From: Macrostomum lignano
Lineage: Eukaryota
Direction of reading: 5' to 3'
Assembly (NCBI GenBank): GCA_002269645.1
Contig: NIVC01001272.1
Coordinates: forward strand, 62,001 to 126,000
Length of the DNA: 64,000 nt
Numbering within the stretch: position 1 is the stretch's first letter; each line of letters starts with the position of its first letter. A program made the position numbers and the translations under genes. A model generated the notes under the pieces. It made no database searches and was not told the DNA's origin. It worked only from the letters and a program-made list of their open reading frames with translations. Of this stretch, positions 6,443 to 45,596 are shown one piece after another.

Positions 6443-9400
6443 GCTACTACTAGTGGTCTAGGATTCTCGCTCACGGCTCAGATTGAGCCAGTGCAGCCGC
6501 ACTCAGTTCATACTCTGGTGTTCCGCTCGCTGAAGCGAACTCACGATATGTTCTTGTCTGACAGGGACTGCCTGCCAGCCCCAGACCCTACTGCTGACAA
6601 AGTCAGGCAGGCTGTCAAGGCTAGGGACCAGTTCGGACCGGTGCTGCACATGCAATCGTCTGCTAAGACTGCCAGGCCTGCTGCTGGCAAGCAGGTCAGT
6701 TCTGCAACTTCTGCTTCATGCAACTTGAGTATTGTTTGCTTAATTAATTTGAGACAATATTCCTATGTGGAATATCTGAATATCCAACTGATAGAGTCTC
6801 ATATGCCTAACTAAAAGAATCTCATGCTCAACTACAAGAATCTCATGTCCAGCTAAAATAATCTCATGTCCAGCTAAAATAATCTCATGTCCAGCTAAAA
6901 GAATCTATGCTCAACTAAAAAAGTCTCATGTCCAGCTAAAATAATCTCATGTCCAGCTAAAATAATCTCATGTCCAGCTAAAAGAATCGCATGTCCAGCT
7001 AAAATAATCTCACGTCCAGCTAAAATAATCTCATGTCCAGCTAAAAGAATCTATGCTCAACTAAAAAAGTCTCATGTCCAGCTAAAAGAATCGCGTGTCC
7101 AGCTAAAATAATCTCATGTCCAGCTAAAAGAATCTCATGTTCAACTAAAAGAATCTCGTGCTCAACTAAAAGAATATCGTGCTCAACTAAAAGAATCTCT
7201 TGCTCAACTAAAAGAATCTCATGCTCAACTAAAAGAATCTCATGCTCAACTAAAATAATCTCTTGCTCAACTAAAAGAATCTCATGCTCAACTAAAAGAA
7301 TCTCATGCTCAACTAAAAGAATCTCATGCTCAACTAAAAGAATCTCATGCTCAACTAAAAGAATCTCATGCTTAACTAAAAGAATCTCATGCTCAACTAA
7401 AATAATCTCATGCTCAACTAAAAGAATCTCAAGCTCAACTAAAAGAGTCTCTTGATCTTTCTTTCAGGCCGCCATTGCCGCCGCGCCAGCTGGCTCAGAC
7501 GGCGCAGACTCTAACTCGGCTTTGATCCCAGCTTCTGCCGCATCCGCAGCTTCTCAGCCCGCCTCCTCGGCTGACCCGGGCTCTGCAGCCGCTTCCGCTG
7601 CCGCCGCCAACACGGCGTCGGTTCAAGTTGGCGAAGAGCGAATGCTGGTGCCTAAACGGGCTCCGCTGATGCCCAAGCCCGATTGGCATCCGCCATGGAA
7701 ACTGTACCGGGTCATCTCGGGTCACACCGGCTGGGTCAGGTAAGTGGCGTCGTCTGTGAAGTTTTTCGTCATCTATGCGCCTCTGAACTCTGATAATAGG
7801 GAATATCCCAGATCCCCAACATCCAGAATCTCCCCAGTCCCCATCATCCAGAATCTCCCCGATCCCCATTATCCAGAATCTCCCCAATCCCCAGCATCAG
7901 GTATCTCCCCAATCCCCATCATCAAGAATCTCCCAATCCCCATCATCCAGATTCTCCCCAATCCCCATCATCCAGATTCTCCCCAATCCCCATCATCCAG
8001 ATTCTCCCCAATCCCCATCATCCAGATTCTCCCCAATCCCCATCATCCAGATTCTCCCCAATCCCCATCATCCAGATTCTCCCCAATCCCCATCATCCAG
8101 ATTCTCCCCAGTCCCCATCATCCAGATTCTCCCCGATCCCCATCATCAAGAATCTCCCAATCCCCATCATCCAGATTCTCCCCGATCCCCATCATCCAGA
8201 ATCTCCCAATCCCCATCATCCAGATTCTCCCCAATCCCCGTCATCCAGATTCTCCCCAATCCCCATCATCCAGATTCTCCCCGATCCCCATCATCCAGAA
8301 TCTCCCCAGTCCCCATCATCCAGATTCTCCCCAATCCCCATCATCCAAATTCTCCTTAATCCCCATCATCACCAGGAATCTCCCCAATCCCCATCGTTAG
8401 GAATAATCCTTCCTTAGCACCAATCTCCACCAAGAATCCCTTATCTCAAACTCAAACTTATCTCAAATGTCATTGCAACCCCGCATCTCCAGGTGTGTAG
8501 CTGTGGACCCGTTGAACCGGTATTTTGTGACTGGAGCAGCTGATCGACTGATTAAAATCTGGGATCTGGCTAGCGGTACGCTGAAACTGTCTCTAACTGG
8601 GCATATTAGCACTGTTAGAGGCTTACAGGTGAGTCATATCTGTGCATACGTAATTTATTAGATTAAAAAATTATTCAATATTCATAATGCAAAAGTTCAC
8701 ATATGTACGCGTGTATTCTCATATGCACAACTTGTGTGCACTTTTTTATGCATTACATGTAGTCTAGTGAGGAGGTTGTACCTACTTGTTAGAGCGTCGG
8801 ACTCATTACTGAAAGGTCGGGGGCTCGATTCCCGATCCCACTCGAAACAATTTGTGTCCTTGACCTTGAGCAAGACACAACTCTGCATTGCTTCAGCTCA
8901 CCCAGCTGTAAAATGGGTGCCAGCATTAGCTGGGGTGATTGAGGGTGTGTGGCGACCCACCAGTCCTTGGAATGAACAGCCGTACGCTGTTTTATATGCT
9001 AGATGCGCAAAGTTAGGGCAGGTGAAATCAATTATTATCAACTATTATTACAGTAATGTGTACACCCAATATGTACATCCTATATACTAATTTTGCGCTG
9101 TCTGCCTGTCTGTCTGTCTGTCTTTCTTTGATTTTTTCGAGAACAGTCTGAACGAGAAATAAAGCCGATATGTATCGAAAAATATAAAACTAGAGAAAAA
9201 AGCCGATATGTATCGAAAAATACAAAGCCGATATGTATCGAAAAATATAAAACTGTCAAAGGCGATATGTATAGAAAGAATAGAGAAAACCCCAAGATGA
9301 AAACTTCGACTTAGAAGTGGTCAAATAAAGTGGGAATATTATGAATTTGAATTCCCCCCACGGGTCTGTACGCTCTCTAAAGTACACAGTCAGCTATTCA

Positions 9401-12672: not shown

Positions 12673-13976
12673 TACGAGGGGCGATCAAAAAGTTCTGTCA
12701 CTGCTTAATTTTTTCTGCACACGGGACTTCTCTCTAATTGATTTTAGTTGTTACCATAGACACATCATGTCCCCTACTTAACCATAACTTTTTTGAAGCC
12801 ACTCTTGCTTAACTCAAGAATCTGCAGCATTTCTTCATCACCACCCTTGAGCAACTATGTCAATCTCAAGCGAAGCCATACGTGCCATCATCCATTATGA
12901 GTGGAGGCGTGGCACAGCAGCTAAGGATATTGAAGCCCGCTTGGTGATCAACATGGAGAGTCTGCACCGTCATATCGCACCATATATCATTCGCTGGATT
13001 CACAGTTTTGAAGGAGGCAAAGGGGACTTCGAAGACGAACCTCGCAGTGGCAGACCCAGGACCTCCAACCAGAGTGTTATCGACAGCGTCCAGAGCCTCC
13101 TTGACGAGGACACGCGAGTGACTATTGCTGAGATAGCAGAGGCCTGTGGTATCAGTTATGGCAGCGCGCAGTCCATCCTGACGGTCCAGCTGGGAATGTC
13201 GAAGGTTTGTGCCAGATGGGTGCCGAAACTCCTGACTGCGGAGATGCAGCGCAATCGGATGCAGGCGTGTCAGTACCTGCTCCACCTGATGCAGCACCGC
13301 CAAGATGAGTTTCTCGACTCTATCGTGACAGGCGATGAGTCGATGTTCTCCCTATACGAGCCGGAGACCAAAGCTCAAAGCATGCAGTGGAAGCGCCCCG
13401 ATGAACCCACTCCGATGAAGGCCAAGACGGTGCCATCAATGAAGAAGCGGATGGGCACCATCTTCTGGGATCGGCAAGGGGTGCTGCTAATCGAGTGGCT
13501 GCCTGAGAAGCGGACGGTTACTGGAGACTCTTACGTTGCCACATTGCGCCAGCTGAAGGAAGCAATCAAGGAGAAGAGGCGTGGAAAGGTCACTAGGGGC
13601 ATCCGGCTTCTCCATGACAACCGCCTCGGCGCACACCTGTCACAAGGCGCAGGCTGCTATCCGCGAGCTGGGGTTCGAGCAGCTCCCTCACCCTGCTCAT
13701 TCGCCAGACCTGGCCCCATCGGACTTCTGGCTGTTTCCGGCGCTGAAAAACTCGCTGCGAGGGCGCCACTGGGCTTCTGTGACTGCACTGGCATCCTCGG
13801 TGAACCAGTGGTGCAAACACCAGGATGAAGACTGGTACGCTGCGGGCATTCAGAAGCTACCAGAGCGCTGGGCCAAGTGTGTCACTGCGTGGGAACTTTG
13901 TTGAGAAAGTGCAGGACGATTAACAGTTACATCGTTGTTTGTTTTGTTTCTAGTTAGGAAAGTGACAGAACTTTTT
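12673..13976 (+). mobile_element. Mariner (DD34D) transposon, decayed; right TIR truncated
   Basis: Left end TA-CGAGGGGCGATCAAAAAGTTCTGTCACT; the right end AGTGACAGAACTTTTT (13961-13976) matches only the inner 16 bp. Transposase motifs WVPKLL, TGDE, HDN and HSPDLAPSD; exactly 34 residues between the 2nd and 3rd Asp after correcting one extra C. Confidence 0.95.
12857..13920 (+). pseudogene. Frameshifted mariner transposase
   Basis: ORF 12857..13828 shifts into ORF 13581..13904 at an extra C near 13621-13622 (HDN|ASAHTCHK). Further indels near 12945-12990 and ~13890 are inferred from displaced consensus-like segments (HGESAPSYRTIY; GNFVEK). Confidence 0.9.
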
Positions 13977-14691: not shown

Positions 14692-17600
14692 CTAATGCTG
14701 CTGCTGAACTGCAGCCAAGACCTGCTCTAGTTTTGATTCCATGCTCTTCATTCGATGCCTCATTCTCTTTACTTTACCCTCAGTTTTCGCATGAAGCTGC
14801 TTGGTTTCAAATCTGTTCCGTTCGCTTTCCTGTAGGAGTAGGCGTACTTGCTGCTTCACGTCAACTGGGCCCTCGGAAGTCTGACCCCTCTCATTTCCTT
14901 CAGGCTTTGCATTCGTCGAATTATCATGCTTGTGGTAGTGTTCCTCTCCTTGGTGCTTTAAATCTTCAAGCATTTCTTGAACCTCCAATTTCAACTCCGA
15001 CAGCTCGTTTGCTGTGTGCGCCTTTGCCACGTCGAAGTCGTTTCTGTTCCACTGGGTGTCCCGTAGCAGGCGGGAGCGGCAGCGACGGAATTGAATCGCC
15101 TGGAACTCCAGAAACCGGTTGTAGTCTGGCGGGTAGAGCGACTTGTCTTGCCACCAATTCGCACCGTTTACCTGAAACGTTAAAAAAAATTATTCGCTGT
15201 CACGATTTTTAGGGCGAAGTACGATTATAAGCCTTACCTGGTCGTTGTCACTTCGTCTCTCAGAGTCAGTGGCGCCAGAGTCAGTGGCGCCAGAGTCACC
15301 GGCGCCAGAGTCATCGACTGCATTTTGGTTGATACTGCAACTTCGCGATCTGCAGCTTTCGCAAAATTTCTTCCCAACGTACCTGTAGTGTGAGCATCTT
15401 TTGCGATAGCCTTGTATTCTATAAGTTAGGTTTTGCATTATTGTTATTGAATTGTTATTTTGCTTTAGTTTAGTCATACGTTTTTGGTGTACTTTTTCCT
15501 TGTTAGTTAGAATCAATTTTGCGTGAACAGGTTAGAGTTAGACGCTATTTGTGACTCAGCGGAGGGTTGAGTTTGTCTGCGAACCCCAGCTTTGCGCGGT
15601 CAGCCAATCAGAACCGGCCTGGACCCTGGCACGCGGCAAGTTTCAATTTTACCCGGCGCCGCGGGCACAGTGCAATTCGGCTTAAGCGAGCGGCCGACCA
15701 GACGACCACCACCCGGCTTGAGGGGGTTTTGAGGGGTTGTGACTCTGACTATATATGAAAGTGTGTTTTGGCAATCGGATCTCGCTTGCTCCCTTTCCCC
15801 GGTTTTGTCTTGTCCAGTTCCCGGCCGGTGGCCCGATTTCTCCTCTCTTGTTGGTTCGCGCTTTGAGGCGCCTGAATTCTTCACCCCCGGTCCATTTTTT
15901 TGTTCCCGCCCAACCGCAGTAGTCTTGTGGCGTAACGTCTACGGCAAATTTCTGTCTGAAGTCGTCGCTATCAAGCGCGGTTAGATAGAGACTGTCGGAT
16001 CTGATCAAGTACGCGGCCTCGACCCCGAGGGCCCCAGTGTTACACTGAAGGGCAGTGCCGATAGAACTTAGTCGGTACTCCGTTGAACGGTCGGTTCGGC
16101 AGTGCTCTCGTTTGAGAGTAGGTTCTGGCTTAGGCCAGGGGTTAGGAGTCTTCTCCGTGGTCCTGTGTTCGGTGCCTCCTTCTTCTTCAGCTGAGATCCG
16201 CTTGTCAGTGCGTATGTAATCATTATTTATTAACCGTTGTTGTCGTTTTGTCAACTCTAGTTATCTGCGCCGTTTGTCTAAATCTTGTAACTCAGCTAAT
16301 CAAATTAAACCGTCAATCAAGTTAGTTATTCTTGAAATAGGATTATCACTCTCTAAATCTTTCGGTTTGTGTTTCCTCGTGTTCTTTATTTTCTTGTACT
16401 GTATCTGCGGCTATTGGAGAAGACTGGTAGAACTCGCCGACCGGCGATAGGCGATTAGGATTAATAGCTTTAAAATCTCTGACGCTCCAAGTAGGTTTGT
16501 CTAGGGCCTAAATAATTGCTCACCGTGCATGCTATTATCTAATTGCCTATTTATCACATACCGCAGAAAATAGTGCAAGTTCACCAGAAAAGAGAAAGGC
16601 GGTGGAATTGTAGGCAACTTATTGTACTCCTTCAGCATTTTAAAGAATTTCTTTCTCCAAATCCCGGTGGCTACGCCGTAAATTTGAGTGACTCGCAAAT
16701 TGAAGAGCGCGATCAGCAGGTTCATCATCACCACATTCACCAGGCCCATAAAAATGAATATTAGCAAGTAGTAGAACCACTCATATCCTTGTTTGATGGC
16801 GACTTCTCCGAGTTTTGTGCTGTTTGGAGAGGAACTGAGCTTGATTTGATCAAAGTTGCTAAACAGCAAGTTAAACGACAGGGTTGCAGCCTGAATGAAG
16901 ACTTCCCAACCGTAGTACGCATTGCCAACGTGAGCTGTGGGGGCCCAGGCAAAGGAAAACAACAGGCACGTGAAAAATACTCCAAAACAGCAAACAATCA
17001 CAAGCAGAATTGTCAGAAAAGGCAACAAGTCGAAATAAATCAGTCTCCCCAGCATGCTGATCATTGGCCCGACGCTCTCAAAGTAGCTCAAAAACGTCAC
17101 GGAGCGAAAGCAGAAAAGCACAAAGGACGTGCTTAGGACCATTTGACTTGGATAGGCTTCCTCCAATTTTAGACCATTACCGTAGTAGATCCATCTTGTT
17201 ACCAGGCCAAGAAATAGAAAAAGAATAGCTAAAACATCAAAAACATTATTGCAGTCAGCTATGTATGCGGGAATTCGTAGCACGTATTTACCAATTCGGA
17301 CTGCCTCTTTTGAAGATCTTAGTCTCCAGCTTTCAGCTATTTCTTGTGAGGCGAACGATAGAAAATAGGCTACTAAAATAGCATCCACCGCAGGCAGTGG
17401 AAAGGTAATCTGAAAGTTCAGAATGTACCAGCCGAAGAAACCAAGGAACCCAACGAAAGCTGTGGTATGGGTCCAAAACTTTGCTCTTGGAGAGTTAATA
17501 TGGGAAATTTTTGGCCTGCACGGCAGGCAGTGATAATTGCCGCAACATTCTGAGCACAAAGAATGGGGATCTCTCCACTCATCTCTCGTCAGCGAGTAGA

Positions 17601-20600
17601 TGCAGTCGGTGGCAAACAGATCTGGGCTATCGGCTTCTTCTACTAGATCGAGAACGCTTCCGTATTTTATCTCTCTTATGTTCTCACCGGACACTGCGTA
17701 CGGAAATTGTGGTCCAGAACAGTTCTTACTGCCTTCTTTGTTATTTTCTTGGTTGCTGCCGCCTGCAATAGTCATTTTTCCCTTTATATATCTGAACAAC
17801 AGCTTGAGCTCCGATGGGCTAGCGTTGACAAAAAGTTCATTCAGTGCGTTCATTGCGATGTTTGTGACTTTCTTCTGCAGTTGCAGCAACTGCTCATGCT
17901 TGCCTTTTGCCTTAGCTCTCATCCTATTTATTTCAGGGCCCAGCTGGATGAGCAAACTGAGGCAGCACGGAATCAGCTCAAACTGTCTAGTCAGAATTAG
18001 CTCAGGCAGGATTTCGTCGCGGTCAAAAAATGCGGCCAAGTCTAGAAGTGCCAGCTCTGAAGTGTTATCAACATGAGTCATTCGCTTGAACATGTTATGC
18101 CGAAGAAAACTTCTTCGGATACTTTCTTCATTATCCAGTGTGCTGATGAAATGCTTCGTGAAGAATGCTTCTGTCTCCTGTGTTATCATGTTTAGGCTGA
18201 GTGCTGCACGAAATATCTTTCTGGAGTCCATTTCCAGCGCTCTGATCAGAATCATTCTGTCTGTCTTTTGCTTCTTCGTACCCGAGTTTACAGATGTAGT
18301 TCCGTAGTCATTCGTGATAGTCACGAGAGTGTTTTGTGCCGCTTGCCTGTCAGGGAGCTTTAGTGCTCGTTGTGGTGGATCTAGAAGGCGCCAAATGTCT
18401 GTCATTTTGATCTCCTTGAGATCTTTGTCCGTGATCTGGGAGTTTTCGCTGGCACTGTTCTTTAATTTTTTATTGTACTCCTTAACAGCTTGAATAAGAT
18501 CATCGAAATTTCCGTTCTCAAAAGCTAAGTCAACGCATGATTTTTCTGACTGGGACTTGGACCAAAGCGTTAAATTGTTCTCAAGTAGAAACACAATATT
18601 TTGCCGATGGCCGGATGCGCAGGCAAAGTGCAAGCACGTATCTGCATCCTCAACGTTTTCGCAGGAGCGTGGCTTCACTTTTGACTTGATAAGGCTGCAT
18701 TTGTCCTTGGTATTCAATAGAATCTTCATAGAACCAAGCATTACCTGCAGATTGTATTGGCCTGAGAACGTGTGAATTAGGTGAGCACCTGTTTTTGAAT
18801 TGACTAAAATTTTTTTAAAGATCGTAGCAGCCTCATCGTCGGACGGAATCTTCTCTAACAGCTTGCATAGAACTGAAGTGTCTAGTTTTGTTGCGTGCAG
18901 GCAGTTCAAGTTGAGATTGTTTAGAGCCTCTGCGTTTACATTCTTACTAACAAGCAGTTTGAATCGATCCAAAATCAATTTCGCGTTTTTGTCATTCTTC
19001 AGAGTTGGCTCTGTTGAGCCAATTGCTGCTTTCATTTTTGTCTTCATCAGCGAATGCAGCAAAGTATTTCCTGCTGCGTCTGTGCGCTGGAGCTCCTCTT
19101 CTGGCATTTTGTTAATCAGGTGCTCCATAGTAAATCGTTGGGAATGCGAAACTTGGACAATCGGCTCTTCTTGATCCATTAGGTCGATTGCTAGATGAAG
19201 CACTGACTGATTTTTGTTGTTTCTCTTCCGCAGAATCTTTGAAGCTTCATTCGTCGCAAGTACTCCATATTGTTCAAACAGAATGCGAAAGAGCTCACTT
19301 TTGTCCTGCCTTTTGGCACCGATGTGGAAAATCGTGTTGCCCGATTTATCGGCTATGAGAAGACCGCCGATTTGTTTTAAATGTTTATGAAGCAGCTCAT
19401 TGACAGTTTGTAACTGACAGTTTTCGACAGCGTAATGTAAAACAGTTGATTTTTGTTTGTTTTGAACAAGCAGACATCCTGGATCGTTGGATATTTCAGC
19501 TTTTTTATCCGTTTGCTGGCTGAACTGACCACTCCATTCACTCCATCGCTGCATGCGAGATGCACTTTTCAGACGTATTGTTTCTAAGATGGGTTTATTA
19601 CTTGGCTCATCTGCATTTTTCTGACGCTTTGCTGCTACAACCCCTACAGCCTCAAGGAGTACATCATCTTGATCAGAGCACTGAGCAATAGCGTGCAGAC
19701 ACGTGTCGCCCTGTTTGTCTCTCAACTCGTACCAACTTGGCACCCCTGACGACGCTTTTTTAATTAACTTGTGAGCCCTTTCCTTGCTGCATTTTTTAAG
19801 GGCCACATGTAGAACTGTTTCTCCATTTTTGTTGGCGGACTTTAGCTTGGCAGCATCTAAATTCATTTGTGTTTCTAAATGGCCAAGGGCATCGGCGGAA
19901 TTTCTGGCAGCAAAATGGGCCACACCGTTGCCGTCGACATCTTTGTCCGTCAGCAAGTCACTGGCATTTTTAATGCCATCGATGATTTCCTGGAGAACAC
20001 CTTCGTCTCGGCAGTGCTCTATCACTTTATGCAACACAGTCTCATTTCTATTGTTTTTCCACTTCCAGCACATGGTGGAGGATTTTTCATTTATCTTGAG
20101 AATCGTTTTTGGGTATACCGAGTTTTTGGCAGCCCAGTGAGCACACGTGTCTCCATTTGAGTCTTTGAGACGCAATAGACTGAATGATTTTTGTGACTTG
20201 ATTAATTCTGTGAAGTTTTGATCCCAAGACTCGGCGGAATGGTAGCGGGCCGATAGTTGTAGAGGTGTTATTTTGTCCTCGTCTGGAGTTGTTAGACAGT
20301 TTGGCCCGAACTGCTTAACTATTTCAGTGAGCAAACTTTCCCCATCCCTATGCTTGGCGGCATAGTGAGCAGCGGTCCTGAGGTGGTCATCTTGAAACTC
20401 CAGAAGTTTCAGTCCTGGAGTTTGGAGTCCTGGATATCGGAATTCTGGAGTCCTGGATATCGTAATAAAATCAAGAGCCGTCTCGAATTTTTTTTTGCTT
20501 GCGTACAGAAGCAATTCTTCGCTTGGATCGGCACTGATCTCATCTTCGTCGCTATCATCGTAATCACTAGCCACTTGGTCAGCTTCCGCTTGATTCTCCA

Positions 20601-20601
20601 T
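14692..20601 (-). CDS. Ankyrin-repeat TRP-family cation channel with TRPM-type membrane region, TRP domain and C-terminal coiled coil (~1566 aa, 3 coding exons)
   Basis: Exons 20601-16562, 15418-15238, 15171-14692 join in frame by GT-AG (4701 nt). About 13-15 ankyrin repeats (GDTCAHWAAK, NETVLH, GNTLLH, DTCLHFACASGH), six hydrophobic segments, and NLLIALF...WRKKFFKMLKEYNKLPTIPPPF aligning with the TRPM S6/TRP box. Confidence 0.8.
15550..16348 (+). mobile_element. Possible solo-LTR-like or other repetitive insert in the channel intron (antisense to the gene)
   Basis: GC-richer block starting TGTGA and ending TATCA, containing CCAAT (15604-15608), TATATATGAAA (15750-15760) and ATTAAA (16304-16309). 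No TSD found; boundaries uncertain. Confidence 0.3.
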
Positions 20602-21285: not shown

Positions 21286-22067
21286 ATTGTTGGCACTTGG
21301 AAGTCAATTCACCTGGACCTTATCAATCTGGAGTGCCATCCTAAGACAGCTTTTTATATCAATGTGTCTATCGTAATTTGTCTCAATTTTTTTTTCATTT
21401 CTGCGTCTGAAGCAGCCTGAATTCGATGATGCACTCGCGAAGAAGTTGCAACTAATCAGTTGTACACCGAATTCAGGAACTTTTGCTCATCCATGGGGAT
21501 TGGAGCTTCAAAAGGCTTTTTGTGTATAAATTTAAAAAAAAATATTTTCCTTAGTTAAAAAAACGCTAATTTTGCTGCTAATAAGTAAGCTGATGAGAAA
21601 ATTTACCGCGAGTTTTGAATTGGGTTCTTGTTGGCAAAGTCAAGTATCCTAGCGGTTGTGTGCCGATCTAAAAAAGTTGAGGTAAGTGTGGTCACTGATT
21701 GAATATTTGTTAATTCATTGTTACTTATTGTGGCAATTCTAATTTATTTTTTGTAATTAATTTTGTACTTTTGTACTTTGTTTGATAGAAACATGGAACT
21801 CGCCTATTTAGTGTTTAACACTCTTAGTATAGTACGTCTGTCTTTAGTATAGTACGAGCGTACCTCCTTTATCATAAAGAGTTTGTTCGCAGGGGAGGTT
21901 ATGACCACAAATCAAGGTGCGGAGACAGTTTAACGTGACAAGTTGTTCTTCCTATGCATACAATACATCAATGTAATTCAGCAGGCGCACTCAAAGCAGA
22001 ATATACAACAGTCATAACTTTTGAATCATCAAGCATCGCAAATACTTTGCACTGTGTGGCTTCTCTT

Positions 22068-23501
22068 TGAACTGAGTTAAGGATTGGAATGGATTAAAGA
22101 TTAAGCTGGATTAAGAACTGAACAGGATTAAGGATTTGACTGGATTATGGATTTGACAGGATTAATGATTTGAGAGGATTAAGGATCTTACTGGATTAAG
22201 GATTGAACTAGATTGAGGATTTGACTGGATTAAGAATTGGGCTGGATTAAGGATTGAACTGGATTAAGGATTGAACTGGATTAAGGATTTGACCGGATTA
22301 AGGATTGAACTGGATTAAGAATTGGGCTGGATTAAGGATTGAACTGGATTAAGGATTGAACTGGATTAAGGATTGGAATGGATTAAGGATTAAACTGGAT
22401 TAAGGATTGAACTGGATTAAGAATTGAACTGGATTAAGAATTGAACTGGATTAAGAATTGAACTGGATTAAGGATTTGACTGGATTAAGGATTGAACTGG
22501 ATTAAGGATTGAACTGGATTAAGGATTGAACTGGATTAAGGATTGAACTGGATTAAGAATTGAACTGGATTAAGGATTGAACTGGATTAAGGATTGAACT
22601 GGATTAAGGATTGAACTGGATTAAGAAATGAACTGGATTAAGAATTGAACTGGATTAAGAATTGAACTGGATTAAGGATTGAACTGGATTAAGAATTTGA
22701 CTGGATTAAGGATTGAACTGGATTAAGGATTGAACTGGATTAAGGATTGAACTGGATTAAGGATTGAACTGGATTAAGAATTGAACTGGATTAAGGATTG
22801 AACTGGATTAAGGATTGAACTGGATTAAGGATTGGAATGGATTAAGGATTAAACTGGATTAAGGATTGAACTGGATTAAGAATTGAACTGGATTAAGAAA
22901 TGAAATGGATTAAGGATTGAACTGGATTAAGGATTGAACTGGATTAAGGATTGAACTGGATTAAGGATTGAACTGGATTAAGGATTGAACTGGATTAAGG
23001 ATTGAACTGGATTAAGGATTGGAATGGATTAAGGATTAAACTGGATTAAGGATTGAACTGGATTAAGGATTGAACTGGATTAAGGATTTGACTGGATAAA
23101 GGATTTGACTGGATAAAGGATTGGAATGGATTAATGATTTGACTGGATTAAGGATTTGACTGGATAAAGGATTGAACTGGATTAAGGATTTGACTAGATA
23201 AAGGATTGGAATGGATTAATGATTTGACTGGAATAAGGATTGGTCTGGATTAAAGATTAAGCTGGATTAAGAATTGGGCTGGATTAAGGATTGAACTGGA
23301 TTAAGGATTGAACTGGATTAAGGATTTGACCGGATTAAGGATTGAACTGGATTAAGAATTGGGCTGGATTAAGGATTGAACTGGATTAAGGATTGAACTG
23401 GATTAAGGATTGAACTGGATTAAGAATTGGGCTGGATTAAGGATTGAACTGGATTAAGGATTGAACTGGATTAAGGATTTGACCGGATTAAGGATTGAAC
23501 T
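22068..23501 (+). repeat. 17-bp minisatellite (GGATTAAGGATTGAACT)n, roughly 80 copies
   Basis: Directly visible; homogeneous centre, degenerate edges. Confidence 0.97.
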
Positions 23502-24127
23502 GTGATCTATACCATACCATAAGTCTGCGTTATCATAATATTTAATCAAAAGCTGTGAAGGCTTCATGCAACTTACAGAATTTTTAGAATGTCGGAAGAC
23601 TCAACAAAGTTCAATTTCTAATTTTCAGCGCCTGAAGTGAGAATCTTTCTGGTTTACTGTCTTTATCAAGTCAGAGCAGCCTTCGCATTACATCTACTGT
23701 ATATAGCTGAGTGAAAATGAAACTCATATTCTGCCTCTGGGCGACTTAACCCCCAACCCACCACCTCATCTTTTAAGTGGAGTTAGAGTGCAATGAAATT
23801 CATTCTTCGCTGCTGAGTTATTTTTATAATACGAAACTGGACTAAATTTTTAGTCGCGGGTGCAAGACTTTGCGCTTCGGTGCTGTAATGCGGGCTCTGC
23901 TCAGATTTCTATCTTCTCTTCATTTTTCTATGAGAATTAGTCTTAATTCTAAACAGCTCTATCTCTTTTCATGCTTCAGTGCTCTAGACGTTTCTATACA
24001 GAGTGCCTGCTTGGATTAGAAACTGTGTAGGCGTTCACTGCAGTGCTTTTTTGTCTAATTGTGTGTGTACATGTATATTTATAAAGTTTGCGAGTCCGCT
24101 TCTGAGTTCTTTTAAGATAAGCACTGC

Positions 24128-24908
24128 TGATCTGTCTGTCTGCCTGTCTGTCTGTCTGCCTGCCTGTCTGTTTGTCTGTCTGTCTGTTTGTCTGTCTGTC
24201 TGCCTGTCTGTCTGTTTGTCTGTCTGTCTGTTTGTCTGTCTGTCTGCCTGTCTGTCTGCCTGTCTGCCTGTCTGTCTGTCTGCCTGTTTGTCTGCCAGTC
24301 TGTCTGTCTGTCTGTCTGTCTGCCTGTCTGCCTGTCTGTCTGCCAGTCTGTCTGTCTGCCTGTCTGTCTGTTTGTCTGTCTGTCTGTTTGTCTGTCTGTC
24401 TGCCTGTCTGTCTGCCTGTCTGCCTGTCTGTCTGTCTGCCTGTTTGTCTGCCAGTCTGTCTGTCTGCCTGTCTGTCTGCCTGTCTGCCTGTCTGTCTGCC
24501 AGTCTGTCTGTCTGCCTGTCTGTCTGTCTGTCTGCCTGTCTGTCTGTCTGCCTGCCTTAGTGTCTGTCTGTCTGTCTGCCTGCCTGCCTGTCTGTCTGTC
24601 TGCCTTAGTGTCTGTCTGTCTGTCTGTCTGCCTGCCTGTCTGTCTGCCTGTCTGCCTGTCTGTCTGTCTGCCTGTTTGTCTGCCAGTCTTTCTGTCTGTC
24701 TGTCTGTCTGTCTGCCTGTCTGCCTGTCTGTCTGCCAGTCTGTCTGTCTGCCTGTCTGTCTGTTTGTCTGTCTGTCTGTTTGTCTGTCTGTCTGCCTGTC
24801 TGTCTGCCTGTCTGCCTGTCTGTCTGTCTGCCTGTTTGTCTGCCAGTCTGTCTGTCTGCCTGTCTGTCTGCCTGTCTGCCTGTCTGTCTGCCAGTCTGTC
24901 TGTCTGCC

Positions 24909-24941
<33 letters not shown>

Positions 24942-26140
24942 GCCTGTCTGTCTGCCTGTCTGTCTGTCTGTCTGCCAGTCTGTCTGTCTGTCTGCCTGTC
25001 TGTCTGCCAGTCTGTCTGTCTGCCTGTCTGTCTGTTTGTCTGTCTGTCTGTTTGTCTGTCTGCCAGTCTGTCTGTCTGCCTGTCTGTCTGTCTGTCTGCC
25101 TGTCTGTCTGTCTGCCTGCCTTAGTGTCTGTCTGCCTGTCTGCCTGTCTGTCTGTCTGTCTGTCTGCCTTAGTGTCTGTCTGTCTGTCTGTCTGCCTGTC
25201 TGTCTGTCTGTCTGCCTGCCTTAGTGTCTGTCTGTCTGTCTGCCTGCCTGTCTGTCTGTCTGTCTGCCTTAGTGTCTGTCTGTCTGTCTGCCTGCCTGCC
25301 TGTCTGTCTGTCTGCCTTAGTGTCTGTCTGTCTGTCTGTCTGCCTGCCTGTCTGTCTGCCTGTCTGCCTGTCTGTCTGTCTGCCTGTTTGTCTGCCAGTC
25401 TTTCTGTCTGTCTGTCTGTCTGTCTGCCTGTCTGCCTGTCTGTCTGCCAGTCTGTCTGTCTGCCTGTCTGTCTGTTTGTCTGTCTGTCTGTTTGTCTGTC
25501 TGTCTGCCTGTCTGTCTGCCTGTCTGCCTGTCTGTCTGTCTGCCTGTTTGTCTGCCAGTCTGTCTGTCTGCCTGTCTGTCTGCCTGTCTGCCTGTCTGTC
25601 TGCCAGTCTGTCTGTCTGCCTGTCTGTCTGTCTGTCTGCCTGTCTGTCTGTCTGCCTGCCTTAGTGTCTGTCTGTCTGTCTGCCTGCCTGCCTGTCTGTC
25701 TGTCTGCCTTAGTGTCTGTCTGTCTGTCTGTCTGCCTGCCTGTCTGTCTGCCTGTCTGCCTGTCTGTCTGTCTGCCTGTTTGTCTGCCAGTCTTTCTGTC
25801 TGTCTGTCTGTCTGTCTGCCTGTCTGCCTGTCTGTCTGCCAGTCTGTCTGTCTGCCTGTCTGTCTGTTTGTCTGTCTGTCTGTTTGTCTGTCTGTCTGCC
25901 TGTCTGTCTGCCTGCCTGTCTGTCTGCCTGTCTGCCTGTCTGTCTGTCTGTCTGCCTGTCTGTCTGCCAGTCTGTCTGTCTGCCTGTCTGTCTGTCTGTC
26001 TGCCTGTCTGTCTGTCTGCCTGCCTTAGTGTCTGTCTGTCTGTCTGCCTGCCTGTCTGTCTGTCTGTCTGCCTTAGTGTCTGTCTGTCTTTCTGTCTGCC
26101 TGCCTGTCTGTCTGTCTGTCTGCCTTAGTGTCTGTCTGTC
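24128..26140 (+). repeat. ~2-kb compound (TCTG)n microsatellite with CCTG/TTTG/CCAG/CCTTAGTG variants
   Basis: Directly visible; source of all VCLS-type ORFs. Confidence 0.97.
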
Positions 26141-27689: not shown

Positions 27690-30600
27690 ATGTCCGGCCT
27701 GGATCCCAAAGACCCAGACTTCAAGTACCTCGGCGTCGACAGGAAAGCCCTGCTGAAGGAGCTCGGCAATGTCACCTTCGATTCTAAGAAAGTTTGCTGG
27801 GTGCCCGACGAGAAGGAGGGATACGTCAAGGGCGACGTGATCTCGCGAGAGGGCGGGAAAGTCACGGTTAAGACGGAGAAAGGAGAGGTGAGAAGTTTAT
27901 CAATTATTAAATTTATGTAAGCACTTGTAGCATGAGTGGTTGTAAGGTTTTAGGCTGCACGACGGAGTGACTGATCAGTGTCTGAGTGACAGCGAAAGTA
28001 AGTGATTAAGTGACTGTGAGTGGATAGATAGGCTGACGGACTAGCAGGTGCTGTTAGTGACTGAGTGGCATTGTGAGTGCGGCAGTGAGTGACTGGGTGG
28101 CATTGTAACTGCGGCAGTGAGTGATTGAGTGACATTGTGACTGCGGCAGTGAGTGATTGAGTGACATTGTGTCTCTGGTAATAAGAGACTGAGTGTGTGA
28201 CTTAGCGACATTGTGACTGCAGCACTGGGGGACAGATTTACATTGTGACTGCGGCAGTGAGTGACTGAGTGACATTTTGACTGCTTCAGACCTGAGTGAC
28301 TTGGTTAACATTAGGAGTAAACACGAATCAACAACAAAATTTGGCCCCAACCAGGAGAAGACCCTGAAGGAGGACGATGTGCAGCAGATGAACCCGCCAA
28401 AATTCGAGCTGTACGAAGACATGGCCAACCTGACCTTCTTGAACGACGCCTCTGTGCTGCACAACTTGAAGCAGCGCTACATTAAAATGCTCATCTACGT
28501 GAGTTGCTTTGTGTATGGGATAGTTAATTGGGATTTAATGAGATAAACATGCAGATGAACATCAAAAGTCGTGGAGAATAAGTTAGATGAGTCATAGAAT
28601 TTGGATATTGTCCTGAGTCATCGATTCACTGTATGACGAGAGTTTTGTTGTGTGGCGTCTGAATTATATCCATGTCACAGAAAAAAGAGCTGCAAAAGAG
28701 AATAGAGGGGTCACAAAGGAGGATAGAGAATCACAGAGGAGAATAGAGTCATAGATAGAGGAGAATAGATAGTCACAGAGGAAGATAGATAGTCATAAAG
28801 GAGAATAGAGAGTCATAGAGGAGAATAGAGAGTCAAAAAGGAAAATAGAGAGTCACAGAGGAGAACAAAGAATCACAGAAGAAAATATAGTCGCAGAGGA
28901 GAGCAAAGAGTCACAGAGGAGAACAAAGAATCACAGAAGAAAATATAGTCGCAGAGGAGAACAAAGAGTCACAGAGGAGAACAAAGAATCACAGAAGAAA
29001 ATATAGTCGCAGAGGAGAACAAAGAGTCACAGAGGAGAACAAAGAATCACAGAAGAAAATATAGTCGCAGAGGAGAACAAAGAGTCACAGAGGAGAACAA
29101 GGAGTCACAGAATAGGACGGAAGCAACCTCGTTAAAAAGGGGGGCTGCATTTGTCGCTTTTGCCTTGATAAAGTTTTAATGAAACCAGTTGCAATAACTC
29201 TAAATCTAACAACGGTATCTCAATCTCAGACCTACTCGGGCCTGTTCTGCGTGGTGGTGAACCCGTACAAGCGGCTGCCCATCTACACCAACAGTGTGGT
29301 GCTGAAGTACAAAGGCAAACGCAAAACTGAGATGCCACCGCACGCGTTCGCCATCTCTGACAATGCCTACTCTAACATGCTGCAGGGTGAGTTGGAATCC
29401 TGCGCCTTAGCAACAGTAACCTCATAAAAATGTTATCGATAAAGTATGTCACTCATGTTTTGTCTACCTTCATTTTAGATCGCGAGAACCAGTCTGTTTT
29501 GATCACGTATGTGGCTGTTTTAATTATTTCAATTTTGTTAATATTTTTAATATAAACTATTTAAATGATCTTTGTTTGTTTAGTTTGATTCAGGCTTCTG
29601 TTTAGCAAGGATACTTTTAACTTTACTAGAAAATGCACATGCTCATTTAAAAATTCCATAACGTCTTGTCACTCTTCTAATTATTTACTCATGTTTTGCT
29701 TTCTTCCAATACGAATCACTTCCAAGATTTGTCACTTCTGTACTTGTCACTCCCTTACTTGTCACTTTCTTAATTGTCACCCCCTTACTTGTCACTCCCT
29801 TACTTGTCACTCCCTTACTTGTCACTCCCTTACTTGTCACTCCCTTACTTGTCACTTTCTTAATTGTCACCCCCTTACTTGTCACTCCCTTACTTGTCAC
29901 TCCCTTACTTGTCACTCCCTTAATTGTCACTCCCTTACTTGTCACTTTCTTAATTGTCACTCCCTTACTTGTCACCCCCTTACTTGTCACTCCCTTACTT
30001 GTCACTCCCTTAATTGTCACTTTCTTAATTGTCAATTTCTTACTTGTCACCCCCTTACTTGTCACTCCCTTAATTGTCACTTTCTTACTTGTCACCCCCT
30101 TACTTGTCACTCCCTTAATTGTCACCCCTTACTTTTCACTCCCTTAATTGTCACCCCCTTACTTGTCACTCCCTTAATTGTCACCCCTTACTTGTCACTC
30201 CCTTACTTGTCACTCCCTTACTTGTCACTCACTTAATTGTCACTCCCTTACTTGTCACTTTCTTAATTGTCACTCCCTTACTTGTCACTCCCTTACTTGT
30301 CACTCCCTTACTTGTCACTCCCTTATTTGTCACTCCCTTACTTGTCACTCCCTTACTTGTCACTCCCTTACTTGTCACTCCCTTAATTGTCACCCCCTTA
30401 ATTGTCACTTCCTTAATTGTCACTCCCGTACTTGTCACTTCTACATTTGTTATTCTCACAGACTTACCACTCTCATAATTTTCACCCCAAATACTTGTCA
30501 CTTCCACATTTGTCACTTCCATAGACTTGTCACTCAGTGATAATTTAGACACTTTGCATTTTCGCTATTTGGCATCGCATTGTTAACACAGCTACATGCA

Positions 30601-33600: not shown

Positions 33601-36600
33601 GTGGTGGACGCTCACCTGGTGCTCCACCAGCTTCACTGCAACGGCGTGCTGGAGGGCATCCGTATCTGTCGGAAGGGTTTCCCAAATCGCCTCATCTACA
33701 CCGAGTTCAAGCAGCGGTAAGTGACATGAAACATGAGATATACAGAAAGAATGAAATCGAGTTCTTAAGATCCCCAGCATCATGTTAACATCCATTTAAA
33801 CATTTTAGCTACTCGATCCTGGCTCCAAACGCTATTCCGGAGGGCTTCGTCGAAGGTAAAGTGGTCAGTGGCAACATTCTCGAGGCTGTGCAACTTGACA
33901 AGCAGCAGTACCGTCTGGGCACCACGAAGGTCTTCTTCAAGGCCGGTGTGCTGGCCGAACTCGAGGACATGCGCGATGAGAAGCTGAGCCGCATCATCGC
34001 GCTGTTCCAGGCCCAGATCCGTGGCTACGTGATGCGCAAGAAGCACAAGAAGCTGCAAGACCAGCGCACTGCTCTCAGCATCATCCAGCGCAACGTGCGC
34101 AAGCACCTGCAGCTGAAGAACTGGGAATGGTGGCGCCTGTACCTCAAGGTTAAGCCAATGCTTAACGTTGCTCGCCAGGAGGAGGAGATGAAGAAGGCTG
34201 CCGAGGAGCTCGCCAAGATGAAGGAAGAATTCGAGAAGATGGAGAAGCTGAAGAAGGAGCTCGAGGAGCAAAATGTCACCCTGCTGCAGCAAAAGAATGA
34301 CATCTTCCTCCAGCTGCAGGCTGAGCAGGACACTCTTGCTGACGCCGAGGAAAAAATTGAAAGCCTCATCAAACAGAAGGCAGACTTTGAGTCGCAGCTC
34401 AAGGAGCTCGAAGACCGTCTCCTTGACGAAGAAGACGCTGCAAACGAACTTGAAGGCGTTAAAAAGAAGATGGAGGGCGAGATGGACGAGCTGAAAAAGG
34501 ATATCGATGATCTCGAGCAGAGCTTGCAGAAGTCTGAGCAGGAAAAGCAGAGCAAGGAGAACCAGATCAAGACACTTCAGGAGGAGATGGCCCGACAGGA
34601 TGAGTCCCTCGCCAAGCTGCAGAAGGAGAAGAAGGCCCATGAGGAGACCATCAAGCAGACGCAAGAGGCTCTTGCTGCCGAAGAGGAGAAAGTGAAGAAC
34701 CTGAATAAGCTGAAGCAAAAGCTTGAGCAGAACCTGGACGAGCTGGAGGACCAACTTGAGCGCGAGAAGAAAGTTCGCGGAGATGTTGAAAAAGCGAAGC
34801 GCAAAGTCGAGGGCGACTTGAAGATGACTCAAGAAACGGTGGACGATCTGGAGCGGGTGAAGCGCGACATGGAGGAGCAGATCAAGCGCAAGGACGCTGA
34901 GCTAAACAGTTTGCACAACAAAGTTGAGGACGAGCAGGGCATCATTTCTCAGCTGCAGCGAAAGATCAAGGAGCTGCAGGCTCGCATTCAGGTAAGAAGC
35001 CTAAATAATTAAATATCGTACTCGCAACTCACCGTAACATTAGCAATCAACTTATCATCGTTGCCTGGTAATTCAGGAACTCGAAGAGGAGCTCGAAGCC
35101 GAACGCCAGGCTCGTTCAAAGGCTGAGAAACAGCGTCAGCAGGTGGAGGCCGAACTTGACGACGTTGCTGACAGGCTGGAAGAGCAGGGCGGCGCCACCG
35201 TGGCTCAGCAGGAGTTGAACAAGAAGCGCGAAGCTGAGCTGCTGAAGCTGCGCCGGGAGATGGAGGACAACGTGCTCCAACACGAGCAGATGGTTCAGCA
35301 GCTGCGCAAGAAGCAACAGGACGCGGTCAACGAGCTGTCTGAACAAGTCGACCAGCTGCAGAAGGCCAAGGGCAAGACGGAGAAGGAGAAAACGCAGTTC
35401 AAAGCCGAGGTTGAAGATCTGCACGCTCAGTTGGAACACGTCAACAAGTCCAAGGCTGCCGCTGAGAAGAATAGCAAGGGCTTGGAGGCTCAGCTGAGTG
35501 ATCTGCAGGTATGCTGAAATACTCTGAGAACCGCTAACCGTTATAAAACTACGTCATTTATTCATAACTTTTTTGCCTAAAGGGCCGTCTGGACGAAGCC
35601 ACTCGCCAGATTGGCGACCTGCAGTCGCAGAAGAACCGAGCTCAACAGGAGGGCGGCGACCTCGGTCGACGACTCGAAGAGGCCGAGGCTCAGCTGGCTC
35701 AGCTGACCAAGGCGAAGCAGCAGCTGACGCAGCAACTGGATGAGGCCAGGTTGAGAATCAATTATTTTTTGCATGCATTTCTACCTCTAGCAGATACTAC
35801 TAAGCAGGCAGAATACAAGTAGTGCTGGGCACTTTTTATTTCGAGGCTTGGTGGCTGGGTGTAGCCTTGCGCACTTTAAGCGACATTGTTTCACAACTGG
35901 CGACAATTCCGCCGACTCCCCTGAGCAGGCACACAAGTGCGCGGATAGTTAGCTATACGCACAGGCACACACTCACACATCTAGGAGTGTACAGCGGCCA
36001 TAACTTTATTTATGGTTAGGCATGTACACTTCACTGTGCCTTGGGAGGTTGGCCTTCAAAGGGCGTCGCCATAATTGATTTCTACCACGGGTCACAAGGT
36101 GGGATGAGGGGACAAAGTATGGGCATGAGCTTTTACTCGGGGGGCAACATGTCCCCTGCACCCCCCCCCCCCGATGGCGACGCCCCCGCTCAAGGCCGTT
36201 AATTGCTTTAGCAGACCCAGGCCGAGATTTCTAATTTAGCCCCAAAATTATGTGACTGCACTTGGAATCGAGCCTGGGCCGCTGGCATATCAGAGCGCCG
36301 CCCTGGGCTACGCCCCCCCCCCCTAGTGCTAGACACTCATCAATAAATCGGTGTATTCACGATGCATTTCTTCGTAAAATACTATCGCAGACGCAATCTA
36401 GAAGACGAGAGCCGTCAGAAGACCAAACTGAGCTCGGAAGCTCGCAACCTGAATGCCGACCTGGACCAGCTGAGAGAGCAGCTCGAGGAGGAGCAGGAGG
36501 CCAAGTCCGATCTGCAGCGGCAGCTGGCCAAGGCTCAAGGTGAGGCCCAGCAGTGGCGCTCCAAGTACGAGACTGGTGGCGGCGGCGGTGGCGGCGAGGA

Positions 36601-40659: not shown

Positions 40660-41339
<680 letters not shown>

Positions 41340-44900: not shown

Positions 44901-45596
44901 TACCCAGTGGGAAAATTGCAACTGCACGAAATCTACATTGTAGTGCGGCAGTGCGTGCTGCTTCTATCACAGAGGGGCAAAGATTCCATCGCCTCGCTTC
45001 TAGAAAAGCTGCCAGACTGCTCCAGGTCGGCCAGAGAGTGCCTGAAAGTTTTGGATTTCCTTAAACTCGGCGATCAAGCATCGGCAAAAAGAGTACTGCT
45101 TGACAACAGAAGCCACAAAGTGAGTCAAGGACTTGAATGGAAAGCAGCAGAAGGATCAGATGAAAGAGCATCAGTTGATATGGTGTGGAATTATTTGAAA
45201 GCTAACGACTCTTTTTGGAAGTTTTCAATGGAGTTCCGTGAACGTCCGGTAATGAAGTTTTTACCTACATTTATTTCTGAGGTTTTTCCATGCCAAATGA
45301 GCAACTACAAAAGCTACCACTATCTGAACTTCAATGCACTGATGAGATGTTTACAGCTTGAGTTCGACTTTGACTCAGATCTTGCCAATGATTGGTTTCA
45401 AAAGACTGCGACGAATGAAGAGTTGGACGACCAAGAGCTGGCCGTCATGCTGCACTACTGCCCCGATACTGATCTTGTCTCTGGGCTGCTAAGCAAGTTT
45501 AGAAGCCGAATGCATCAGTCCCCGTTGGAGAAAGGACTGCTAAGTGAGCTGCAAAATCGAGTAAGTTTCCTGAATATTCCTGAATTGATAGAGTAG
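41945..45596 (+). CDS. Ankyrin-repeat (~15) + cGAS/Mab-21-like nucleotidyltransferase (cGLR-like) fusion, ~1162 aa; one +1 frameshift in exon 3
   Basis: Exons 41945-43650, 43735-44090, 44169-45596 join in phase by GT-AG. NTase motif VGSYSE...ESDIDI, third Asp in VDRVSAF, Mab-21-type LRVSTTFLERRL, LKAYHAKT, EQW..NL, EHFFL. Removing one T from TTTT 44857-44860 joins ORFs 44123..45064 and 44832..45596. Confidence 0.8.

Follow-up and report, generated by a model that had tools for sequence, protein, structure and literature searches.

An ankyrin-array TRPM-type channel gene from a Macrostomum-expanded clade

The gene and the insertion in this copy

The window analysed here is a 64-kb stretch of Macrostomum lignano DNA, and its positions 14692-20601 hold, on the minus strand, one gene with a predicted product of 1,554 aa that is 99% identical to BOX15_Mlig004986g2. 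An uninterrupted ORF of 1,366 codons lies at 16501..20601 (-). The canonical GT-AG model has exons at 20601..16562, 15382..15238 and 15171..14692, gives the full 1,554 aa, and has the same boundaries as a preliminary description of the locus, all of whose quoted peptides (LDLVEEADSPDLFATDCIYSLTRDEW, IWRKKFFKMLKEY, IPPPF, FLEFQAIQF) are present in the product. Exon 1 (16562..20601, minus strand; 4,040 nt, aa 1-1347) encodes an ankyrin array, a linker, S1-S6 and the TRP domain in a single open frame and ends at a donor, G/GTATGT, at 16561. As ankyrins and pore lie within this one exon, joining them needs no splicing, and the proposed fusion is borne out at this level. Paralogues P0002 and P0005 can be aligned to the exon 1 product from about aa 22. 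Exon 2 (15238..15382, minus strand; aa 1348-1395) is Cys-rich, of low complexity and predicted to be disordered, with pLDDT below 50 at residues 623-659 of the AF2 model. A 66-nt intron (15172..15237, minus strand; GTAAGG...TTTCAG) precedes exon 3 (14692..15171, minus strand; aa 1396-1554 plus stop), which was placed by tblastn and encodes the post-TRP helix and helical tail. The paralogues and a metagenomic relative have an intron at the same position, and the two-exon structure is conserved among them.

Exons 1 and 2 are separated in this copy by a solo-LTR-like insertion of 1,175 bp (15384..16558, minus strand) with the ends 5'-TGT...ACA-3', with a 4-bp direct repeat, GGTA, on either side (16559-16562 and 15380-15383). 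Neither the second genomic copy (L001) nor two paralogue loci (L002 and L003) contain it, and an Rfam search of the insertion gave no match. It lies just after the TRP domain, which it parts from the post-TRP helix and tail, and could itself serve as intron 1 (GT at 16561-16560, AG at 15384-15383). Production of the full protein would require splicing of the insertion at the GT-AG sites that its own ends create. It is possible, although we hold this only tentatively, that the copy is instead a disabled allele in which the insertion stays unspliced, so that the product breaks off at aa 1,366 and has neither rib helix nor coiled coil. A disabled allele would accord with an insertion that is derived and found in this copy alone, and with an unspliced frame that stops 19 codons past the exon 1 boundary of the spliced model. 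However, the junctions G/GTATGT and ACAG/G are good splice sites, splicing there yields precisely the sequence that the second copy has without interruption, and exons 2 and 3 are still open. The dN/dS between the two genomic copies is 0.21, by which the gene is under purifying selection, and this too speaks against loss of function.

Domain architecture of the predicted protein

The ankyrin array (18454..20529, minus strand; aa 25-716) comprises about 14-16 divergent repeats by Pfam and matrix scan, close to the 13-15 estimated previously. Pfam matches to the protein are to Ank families only (Ank_2, Ank_4, Ank, Ank_3, Ank_5; Ank_2 at 1.6e-17). A position-matrix scan yields 15 ankyrin-like peaks in aa 1-720 at a spacing of about 36 aa, compared with 5.3 ± 1.9 peaks (maximum 10) in shuffled sequence; two further repeats are visible by eye, and a non-repeat insert of roughly 55 aa interrupts the array at about aa 324-378. 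In the same type of scan, the peak count of one canonical TRPM is at chance level. With its Pfam Ank matches and 15 peaks, the protein differs from canonical TRPMs, which have no canonical ankyrin repeats.

A helical linker (17572..18387, minus strand; aa 739-1010) follows the array. Its distal part is MHR4-like and is closed by the motif LDLVEEADSPDLFATDCIYSLTRDEW (17575-17652, minus strand; aa 984-1009). Profile comparison by hhalign of the family linker with canonical TRPM MHR4/pre-S1 gives 93% probability (E 3e-7) with this motif aligned, and 90.6% with TRPM_MCLZ, the meclonazepam target of Schistosoma mansoni; the linkers of the family and the TRPM_MCLZ group do not detect each other by phmmer. 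There is thus moderate support for an MHR4-type helical region preceding pre-S1/S1, as the preliminary description had read it. No LSDAT_euk (SLOG/MHR1-2) or TRPM2-domain match to the protein was found in Pfam at E<=1, a phmmer comparison with the MHR regions of one canonical TRPM gave no hit, and NUDT9H, kinase and Nudix domains are likewise without a Pfam match. Membership of TRPS by SLOG plus Nudix was rejected, neither domain being matched. Of the suggestion that ankyrins replaced MHR1-3, what stands is that a single protein joins a long array to a linker, pore and TRP module of TRPM type, with SLOG/MHR1-2 absent; the MHR4-like region is retained.

The S1-S6 domain (16693..17490, minus strand; aa 1038-1303) was delimited by phmmer alignment to TRPM2 and a helix map, and includes the pore helix and putative filter FSNFDQ (16846-16920, minus strand). 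It is followed by the TRP helix and TRP box 2 (16582..16692, minus strand), also aligned to TRPM2, in which IWRKKFFKMLKEY (aa 1314-1326) provides W1315 and E1325, and LPTIPPPF contains IPPPF at aa 1332-1336. The TRP box reads IWRKKF. Beyond the insertion lie the rib-like post-TRP helix (15064-15129, minus strand), with FLEFQAIQF at aa 1415-1423 as described previously, and a long helical tail (14695-15039, minus strand) that is probably a coiled coil; within this exon 3 part the AF2 model has helices at its residues 672-693 and 702-730. The coiled coil, asserted in the preliminary description, is inferred from long predicted helices, and Pfam TRPM_tetra gave no hit in the protein.

Sequence, profile and predicted fold all assign the membrane module to the TRPM type rather than to TRPA or TRPC. 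Searched against the PDB with phmmer, aa 1015-1364 match TRPM2 (2.3e-21, over aa 1028-1355), TRPM3, TRPM1, TRPM7 and TRPM4, while NOMPC is matched at 3.8e-11 over aa 1152-1341 only. With the TM region as query TRPM6 is matched, and TRPA1 and TRPC are absent at E<=10. Profile-profile scores (hhalign) for this region are 222-258 with canonical TRPM groups, 213 with TRPM_MCLZ, 43 with TRPC and 21 with TRPA. A TRPA-type membrane domain was rejected on the missing phmmer match and an hhalign probability of 1.3%, and a TRPC-type domain with an EWKFAR TRP box on its score and on the IWRKKF box. The AF2 model (731 residues, pLDDT 80.8) was built from an alignment that contained TRPMs, which biases its membrane part toward the TRPM fold; the best 50 Foldseek matches are all TRPM (TMq 0.48-0.57, alignments covering all 731 residues), with no TRPN among them. 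The TRPM-type pore module proposed earlier is confirmed by these results.

In the VSLD, E1087, E1090, N1119 and D1122 occupy the Ca2+-site positions of TRPM2 (aligned to zebrafish TRPM2 E857, Q860, N883 and D886). Of the five Ca2+-site positions of the TRPM2/4 type, four (E1087, N1119, D1122 and E1325) do not vary across the family; E1090 stands in place of the TRPM2 Gln, and the Q860-equivalent varies in paralogues (E, K, D). Because of this invariance the protein is predicted to be a Ca2+-modulated cation channel. The filter of this copy reads FSN, without the Gly of the TRPM FG(Q/E) motif, and conduction properties are therefore uncertain. The product would act as a subunit in a TRP cation channel built as a tetramer, which the putative coiled coil of the tail would assemble together with the MHR4-like linker, as in TRPMs. 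Its gating would be modulated by Ca2+ at the S2-S3/TRP site, and cations would pass through the unusual F-x-N-F-D-Q filter. The long ankyrin array may take the place of ADP-ribose/SLOG sensing, as a protein-, cytoskeleton- or stimulus-coupling module, and the many paralogues may reflect sensory diversification.

Phylogenetic position and origin of the ankyrin array

The gene groups with many Macrostomum paralogues and one misbinned metagenome contig, the latter unassigned and the only carrier outside Macrostomum among 1.84 billion representatives. This clade is recovered in 195-200 of 200 bootstraps. The tree is neighbour-joining (NJ) only, with no labelled TRPN, TRPV or TRPS references and with weak deep nodes, at 30-55%. 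By the phmmer and profile comparisons above, the membrane region falls with neither TRPA nor TRPC. The premise of the preliminary description that TRPM channels have no ankyrins is outdated, as flatworm TRPM_MCLZ (Smp_333650) lacks MHR1/2-SLOG and carries N-terminal ankyrin repeats, in a group named "TRPM-like" (PMC10788528, PMC11731825, PMC12861061). Since TRPM_MCLZ was published with ankyrins and without SLOG, an array on a TRPM-like pore is an architecture already published and not a new kind. The TRPM_MCLZ orthogroup was recognised by the published residues Y940, H946, Y944 and Y1038 (PMC10788528). The family is large and expanded in Macrostomum, its clade has strong support, and it is probably no orthologue of TRPM_MCLZ. 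The earlier idea of an unnamed TRP subgroup fails for the architecture and may hold for the distinct clade, of which no description was found in the literature.

The carriers of ankyrin-bearing TRPM-like channels that were found are Macrostomum, trematodes, cestodes and a monogenean, all flatworms. It is quite plausible, if somewhat short of probable, that the family arose by strong divergence from the single flatworm lineage to which TRPM_MCLZ belongs, with one ancestral SLOG-to-ankyrin replacement followed by array lengthening and fast evolution in Macrostomum. The two groups share an ankyrin N-terminus, absence of SLOG, a giant first exon and a very low exon number (PMC10788528), and all ankyrin-bearing channels form one clade in 21-30% of corrected-distance bootstraps. 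However, the best NJ tree keeps the two clades apart, the family TM profile is no closer to TRPM_MCLZ than to canonical TRPMs, and the linker similarity escapes phmmer. A joint clade of the family and Smp_333650 orthologues appears in only 5-30% of bootstraps, and competing placements have weak support as well. Descent from the TRPM_MCLZ lineage would refine the main explanation rather than contradict it. The separate clades, the differing linkers and an array of about 15-21 rather than about 6 repeats would also suit an independent gain by a second domain-shuffling event. This we consider unlikely, given that two identical fusions confined to flatworms are less parsimonious and that Macrostomum itself has TRPM_MCLZ-like intermediates (P0052, P0057, P0072) with ankyrins and a clear MHR4.

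In the rooted NJ tree the family is basal to all other TRPM-like sequences (36-39% of corrected-distance bootstraps, 89% with uncorrected distances), and MHR3 and MHR4 are reported to hold divergent, degenerate ankyrin repeats (Burroughs 2015 as cited in PMC13143021). Both would fit an old stem branch of the TRPM/TRPS group that kept ancestral ankyrins and never acquired SLOG. We regard such an origin as very unlikely, since the family is confined to Macrostomum and the one contig, long-branch attraction would yield the same basal placement, which is strongest with uncorrected distances, and the ancestor inferred by Himmel 2020 had SLOG and no ankyrins (PMC7306681). It is similarly improbable that the Macrostomum clade branched early within the TRPM/TRPS superfamily and kept a long ancestral array, the TRPM_MCLZ-like channels being intermediates and MHR3/MHR4 of ordinary TRPMs the degenerate remnant of that array; were it true, the inferred "ankyrin-free, SLOG-linked" TRPM-TRPS ancestor would be overturned. 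The best explanation overall, which we think probable, is an ankyrin-array TRPM-type channel of a Macrostomum-expanded clade, with the mechanism outlined above and, in this copy, an LTR-like insertion that would have to be spliced for the full protein.

Significance and comparison with known channels

Both TRPM_MCLZ and TRPM_PZQ have been validated as targets of anthelmintics, the former being odd for its ankyrins. Dozens of diverged ankyrin-TRPM-like genes are present in Macrostomum, which is free-living and genetically tractable, and one of its clades combines a TRPM pore with arrays as long as those of TRPA/TRPN. With these genes the swap of SLOG for ankyrins could be dated and polarised, and they are a natural experiment on the effect of a long ankyrin array on TRPM gating. 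With RNAi, in situ hybridisation and transgenesis, M. lignano offers a laboratory system for relatives of a parasite drug target. Large TRPM surveys without Platyhelminthes (PMC7306681, PMC13143021) missed this whole architecture class.

TRPS (ced-11-like) channels, the sister family of TRPM, have SLOG and Nudix and no ankyrins (PMC7306681); the window protein resembles them in its TRPM-related pore and lacks both domains. With TRPA1 and TRPN (NOMPC) it shares a long N-terminal ankyrin array before a six-TM TRP channel. These arrays number 14-18 repeats in TRPA1 and 29 in NOMPC. The membrane domain is nevertheless not TRPA-like, and the match to NOMPC is weaker and shorter than that to TRPM2. 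Canonical TRPMs (TRPM2, TRPM3, TRPM4, TRPM7) are the best sequence and fold matches from pre-S1 to the TRP domain, and have in common with the window protein the MHR4 terminal motif, the S4 Arg, the Ca2+-site residues of TRPM2/4/5/8, the rib-like helix and the helical tail. In contrast to them, the window protein has a long bona fide ankyrin array, has no SLOG/MHR1-2, NUDT9H or kinase, and does not conserve the filter Gly.

TRPM_MCLZ shares with the window protein ankyrins in place of SLOG/MHR1-2, TRPM-like S1-S6, a TRP helix with an LPPPF box, C-terminal helices, and a flatworm-restricted gene of very few exons, one of them giant. The array of the window protein is two to three times longer (about 15 repeats compared with about 6), as regularly spaced peaks number about 14-21 across the Macrostomum family and about 6 in TRPM_MCLZ orthologues. 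Its linker is its own, alignable at profile level only. Thr1169 occupies the position of His946, the S4 residue of the VSLD pocket on which meclonazepam sensitivity depends, and the filter is FSNFDQ where that of TRPM_MCLZ is FYSIFEVS.

Gene structure and an insertion in the coding sequence

The ankyrin repeats, S1–S6 and the TRP domain of the channel gene all lie within one exon, inside an unbroken minus-strand ORF of 1,366 codons (16501..20601). Since both parts occupy one ORF, a pair of separate ankyrin and channel genes is ruled out, and the case that the preliminary description would have counted against itself, transcripts that do not join the ankyrins to the pore, cannot apply. Canonical GT-AG sites and the BOX15_Mlig004986g2 model define three minus-strand coding exons (20601..16562, 15382..15238, and 15171..14692), which together encode a 1,554-aa product. 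The outer limits, 14692 and 20601, are identical to those first proposed, and all peptide strings quoted at that stage are found in the protein. The nearest database protein to the ORF is BOX15_Mlig004986g2 of Macrostomum lignano itself (99% identity). Pfam searches of the ORF returned ankyrin families only (Ank_2, 1.6e-17; Ank_4; Ank; Ank_3; Ank_5), with no match to SLOG (LSDAT_euk), TRPM2-domain or Nudix even at E ≤ 1.

A second genomic copy of the gene (L001, GenBank contig NIVC01000045.1), 97–99% identical to the window copy, reads uninterrupted through CTGCGGTACGTTGGG, where the window copy has 1,175 extra bases (15384–16558). The paralogues P0002 and P0005 also lack an intron at this site; the only intron they contain is the small one that precedes 'WW.DK'. 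As it is missing from the second copy and from both paralogues, the 1,175-bp segment is, judged by these comparisons, a derived insertion inside coding sequence. It ends in TGT...ACA and is bordered by a 4-bp direct repeat, GGTA (16559–16562 and 15380–15383); it showed no terminal inverted repeats, matched no Rfam family and had no further copy in the DNA examined. These ends, the target duplication and the lack of inverted repeats form the signature of a solo LTR, and the element is best described as solo-LTR-like. Together with the duplicated GGTA, its ends also form G|GTATGT and ACAG|G, and splicing at these sites would give back exactly the uninterrupted reading frame. Because its GT-AG ends would restore the frame in this way, the insertion may be a newborn intron; without its splicing, the protein would stop at residue 1,366, past the TRP domain and short of the rib-like helix and tail.

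Between the two copies, 16 changes are synonymous and 12 non-synonymous; the resulting dN/dS of 0.21 is consistent with constraint. A homopolymer at codon 36 (window ~20496; L001 ~5579) reads A9 in the window and A8 in the GenBank copy. A8 puts the latter out of frame, and this accounts for the internal start, Met184, of the NCBI protein model; the shift may be genuine or a sequencing error in the homopolymer. Myosin heavy-chain tail exons lie at 33861–37177 (+) (Myosin_tail_1, 8e-40 and 5e-36), and the copy in L001 is also flanked by a myosin gene, so that the two channel-gene copies are syntenic.

Other features of the window include a mariner-type transposase (Transposase_1, HTH_32) at 12857–13904 (+), ~800 bp downstream of the channel gene, which is a decayed copy, being split over two overlapping frames. 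Satellite arrays are dense at 22067–23502 and 24131–26140, and recur at 447–1008, 6809–7451, 7807–8395, 29729–30439, 40660–41339, and 47629–48565; among them are a 17-mer present in 84 repeats and a (CTGT)n-like array 2 kb long. P0009, the UniProt model of a paralogue, contains a translated repeat (EDWKTGR...) matching the 24–26 kb array, and this model is therefore probably chimeric. At 41945–43654 (+), a 569-aa ORF consists of canonical ankyrin repeats (Ank_2, 2.8e-76) and has no channel domain in its vicinity; a Mab-21-like ORF comes after it (44123–45064, +), and both are unrelated to the TRP gene.

Ankyrin array, linker and channel module

Ankyrin repeats were counted with an ungapped position-matrix scan for the helix-turn-helix, with shuffling controls, in place of a home-made ankyrin HMM, which undercounts because the repeats are divergent (five only in the window protein). 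The scan of residues 1–720 gave 15 peaks at ~36-aa spacing (shuffled sequences: 5.3 ± 1.9, maximum 10). Two more repeats were seen by eye, bringing the total to ~14–16, in line with the original estimate. The same scan detected 14–21 repeats across the window family, 7–9 in a second Macrostomum group of ankyrin channels, ~6 at regular spacing in orthologues of the published flatworm channel TRPM_MCLZ, and only chance-level signal in a canonical TRPM.

Comparison of the window protein with all PDB sequences matched residues 1015–1364 to TRPM channels, from pre-S1 to the TRP domain (TRPM2, 2.3e-21; TRPM3, 5e-19; TRPM7, 4e-15; TRPM4, 5e-12; and TRPM1). The match to NOMPC was weaker (3.8e-11) and began only at S3. 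The gene thus combines an ankyrin array with a TRPM-type pore, as the preliminary description had observed. Upstream of the pore, profile–profile alignment between the family and canonical TRPMs, over the 330 residues that precede S1 and extended by 60 aa into S1, gave a probability of 93% (E 3e-7), and placed SVLDLVEEADSPDLFATDCIYSLTRDEW on the end motif of TRPM MHR4. Together, these two matches lend moderate support to an MHR4-like linker.

An initial AF2 model, built from a five-paralogue alignment, was discarded (pLDDT 41). A second, covering residues 739–1469 and using a 42-sequence alignment, reached pLDDT 80.8 and pTM 0.78; because TRPMs were among the aligned sequences, its membrane part does not count as independent evidence. 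The model comprises an all-helical linker (739–1010), S1 (1038–1061), S2 (1070–1093), S3 (1117–1141), S4 (1146–1171), S5 (1178–1214), a pore helix (1228–1246) followed by a loop whose first residues are FSNFDQ, and S6 continuous with the TRP helix (1270–1328). A re-entrant helix and a disordered Cys-rich stretch then lead to a rib-like helix containing FLEFQAIQF (1410–1431) and a long terminal helix. All of the best 50 Foldseek matches to the model in the PDB are TRPM2, TRPM3, TRPM4, TRPM7 or TRPM8, with alignments of 680–840 columns to the 731-residue query and TMq of 0.48–0.57.

In the alignment to zebrafish TRPM2, E1087, E1090, N1119, and D1122 correspond to E857, Q860, N883, and D886, the VSLD Ca2+ site of the TRPM2/4/5/8 type; E1325 occupies the TRP-helix position of the same site. 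Six paralogues show no variation at E1087, N1119, D1122, W1315, and E1325, and these five residues are at least 90% conserved in 42 family, TRPM_MCLZ and TRPM sequences. The filter region, FSNFDQ in the window protein and FGNFDQ in paralogues, differs from FG(Q/E). Given the conservation of the Ca2+-site residues, the product would be expected to form a Ca2+-modulated, tetrameric cation channel, in which a long ankyrin platform, in place of the SLOG ligand sensor, may couple a partner, the cytoskeleton or a physical stimulus.

Distribution of the family

With a linker-plus-channel profile as query, a full HMMER scan across 1.84 billion representatives found 38 below 1e-30, matching from the linker onward; all weaker matches were from pre-S1 only. 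A word-indexed search, run with a profile of a mixed alignment, yielded just four proteins and was set aside. Name look-ups identified nearly all strong matches as Macrostomum lignano proteins. The one exception is a 5,106-bp contig (L004; GCA_036350755.1, JAZBNS010000602.1) filed under a Kangiellaceae MAG and encoding a 1,537-aa family member. Its GT-AG intron coincides in position with the small intron of the window gene, and hence it is a misbinned eukaryotic contig contaminating the bin. The paralogue P0002, 56% identical, lies at 141125–151835 of NIVC01000045.1 (locus L002), the contig of the window gene's second copy, which is ~100 kb away. P0008 is on this contig too; the family is clustered, at least partly. 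Next in rank came channels with ankyrin repeats from flukes, tapeworms and a monogenean, many of which carry the automatic name 'TRPM7'.

Relation to published ankyrin-bearing channels

TRPM and TRPS channels have been described as devoid of ankyrin repeats, these having been lost before the TRPM/TRPS split (Himmel et al. 2020, PMC7306681); Platyhelminthes were sampled neither in that study nor by Morini et al. 2026 (PMC13143021). The flatworm channel activated by meclonazepam, TRPM_MCLZ (Smp_333650), lacks MHR1/2-SLOG, has N-terminal ankyrin-like repeats and three exons, and belongs to a 'TRPM-like' clade adjoining the TRPMs (PMC10788528, PMC11731825, PMC12861061). The fluke and tapeworm matches are its orthogroup, as confirmed by marker residues at the published numbering: Tyr940 in the S. 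turkestanicum protein, His946 and Tyr1038 in the S. haematobium-group protein, and Tyr944 in the S. japonicum-group protein. A strong match in Opisthorchis viverrini (P0172/P0037), a 2,059-aa 'ankyrin repeat protein' with tandem channel domains (853–1154 and 1518–1831), was rejected as a family member. Each domain corresponds to one of two O. felineus isoforms, and the model probably concatenates the alternative TRPM_MCLZ exons 3a and 3b, which have been described (PMC12861061).

A neighbor-joining tree of S1–TRP (122 sequences, 298 columns, 200 bootstraps) was rooted on one TRPA1, with one TRPC, verified against the PDB, as second outgroup, and contained no labelled TRPN, TRPV or TRPS; one group ('X', no SLOG match) could not be assigned to TRPS. 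The window family holds together as a clade in 195/200 replicates, and TRPM_MCLZ groups separately with the second Macrostomum ankyrin group (P0052, P0057, P0072; 125/200). A single clade of all ankyrin-bearing channels appears in 5–30% of replicates, the figure varying with the distance measure. The window family is basal to all others in 36–39% when distances are corrected and in 89% when they are not, a dependence that is the pattern expected from long-branch attraction. Profile scores for the family membrane domain (canonical TRPMs, 222–258; TRPM_MCLZ, 213; TRPC, 43; TRPA, 21) place it as close to canonical TRPMs as to TRPM_MCLZ, and far from TRPC and TRPA.

Of the original interpretation, the architecture and pore type stand, but the claim of novelty is outdated, since an ankyrin-bearing TRPM-like channel is already a published flatworm feature. 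The part that does appear new is the clade itself, found in a free-living flatworm, which is large and divergent and carries long arrays. Taken together, the tree, profile scores and repeat counts indicate that the window gene shares with TRPM_MCLZ the published design of an ankyrin N-terminus on a TRPM-like channel, but differs from it in branching separately and in having a long array and a linker of its own.
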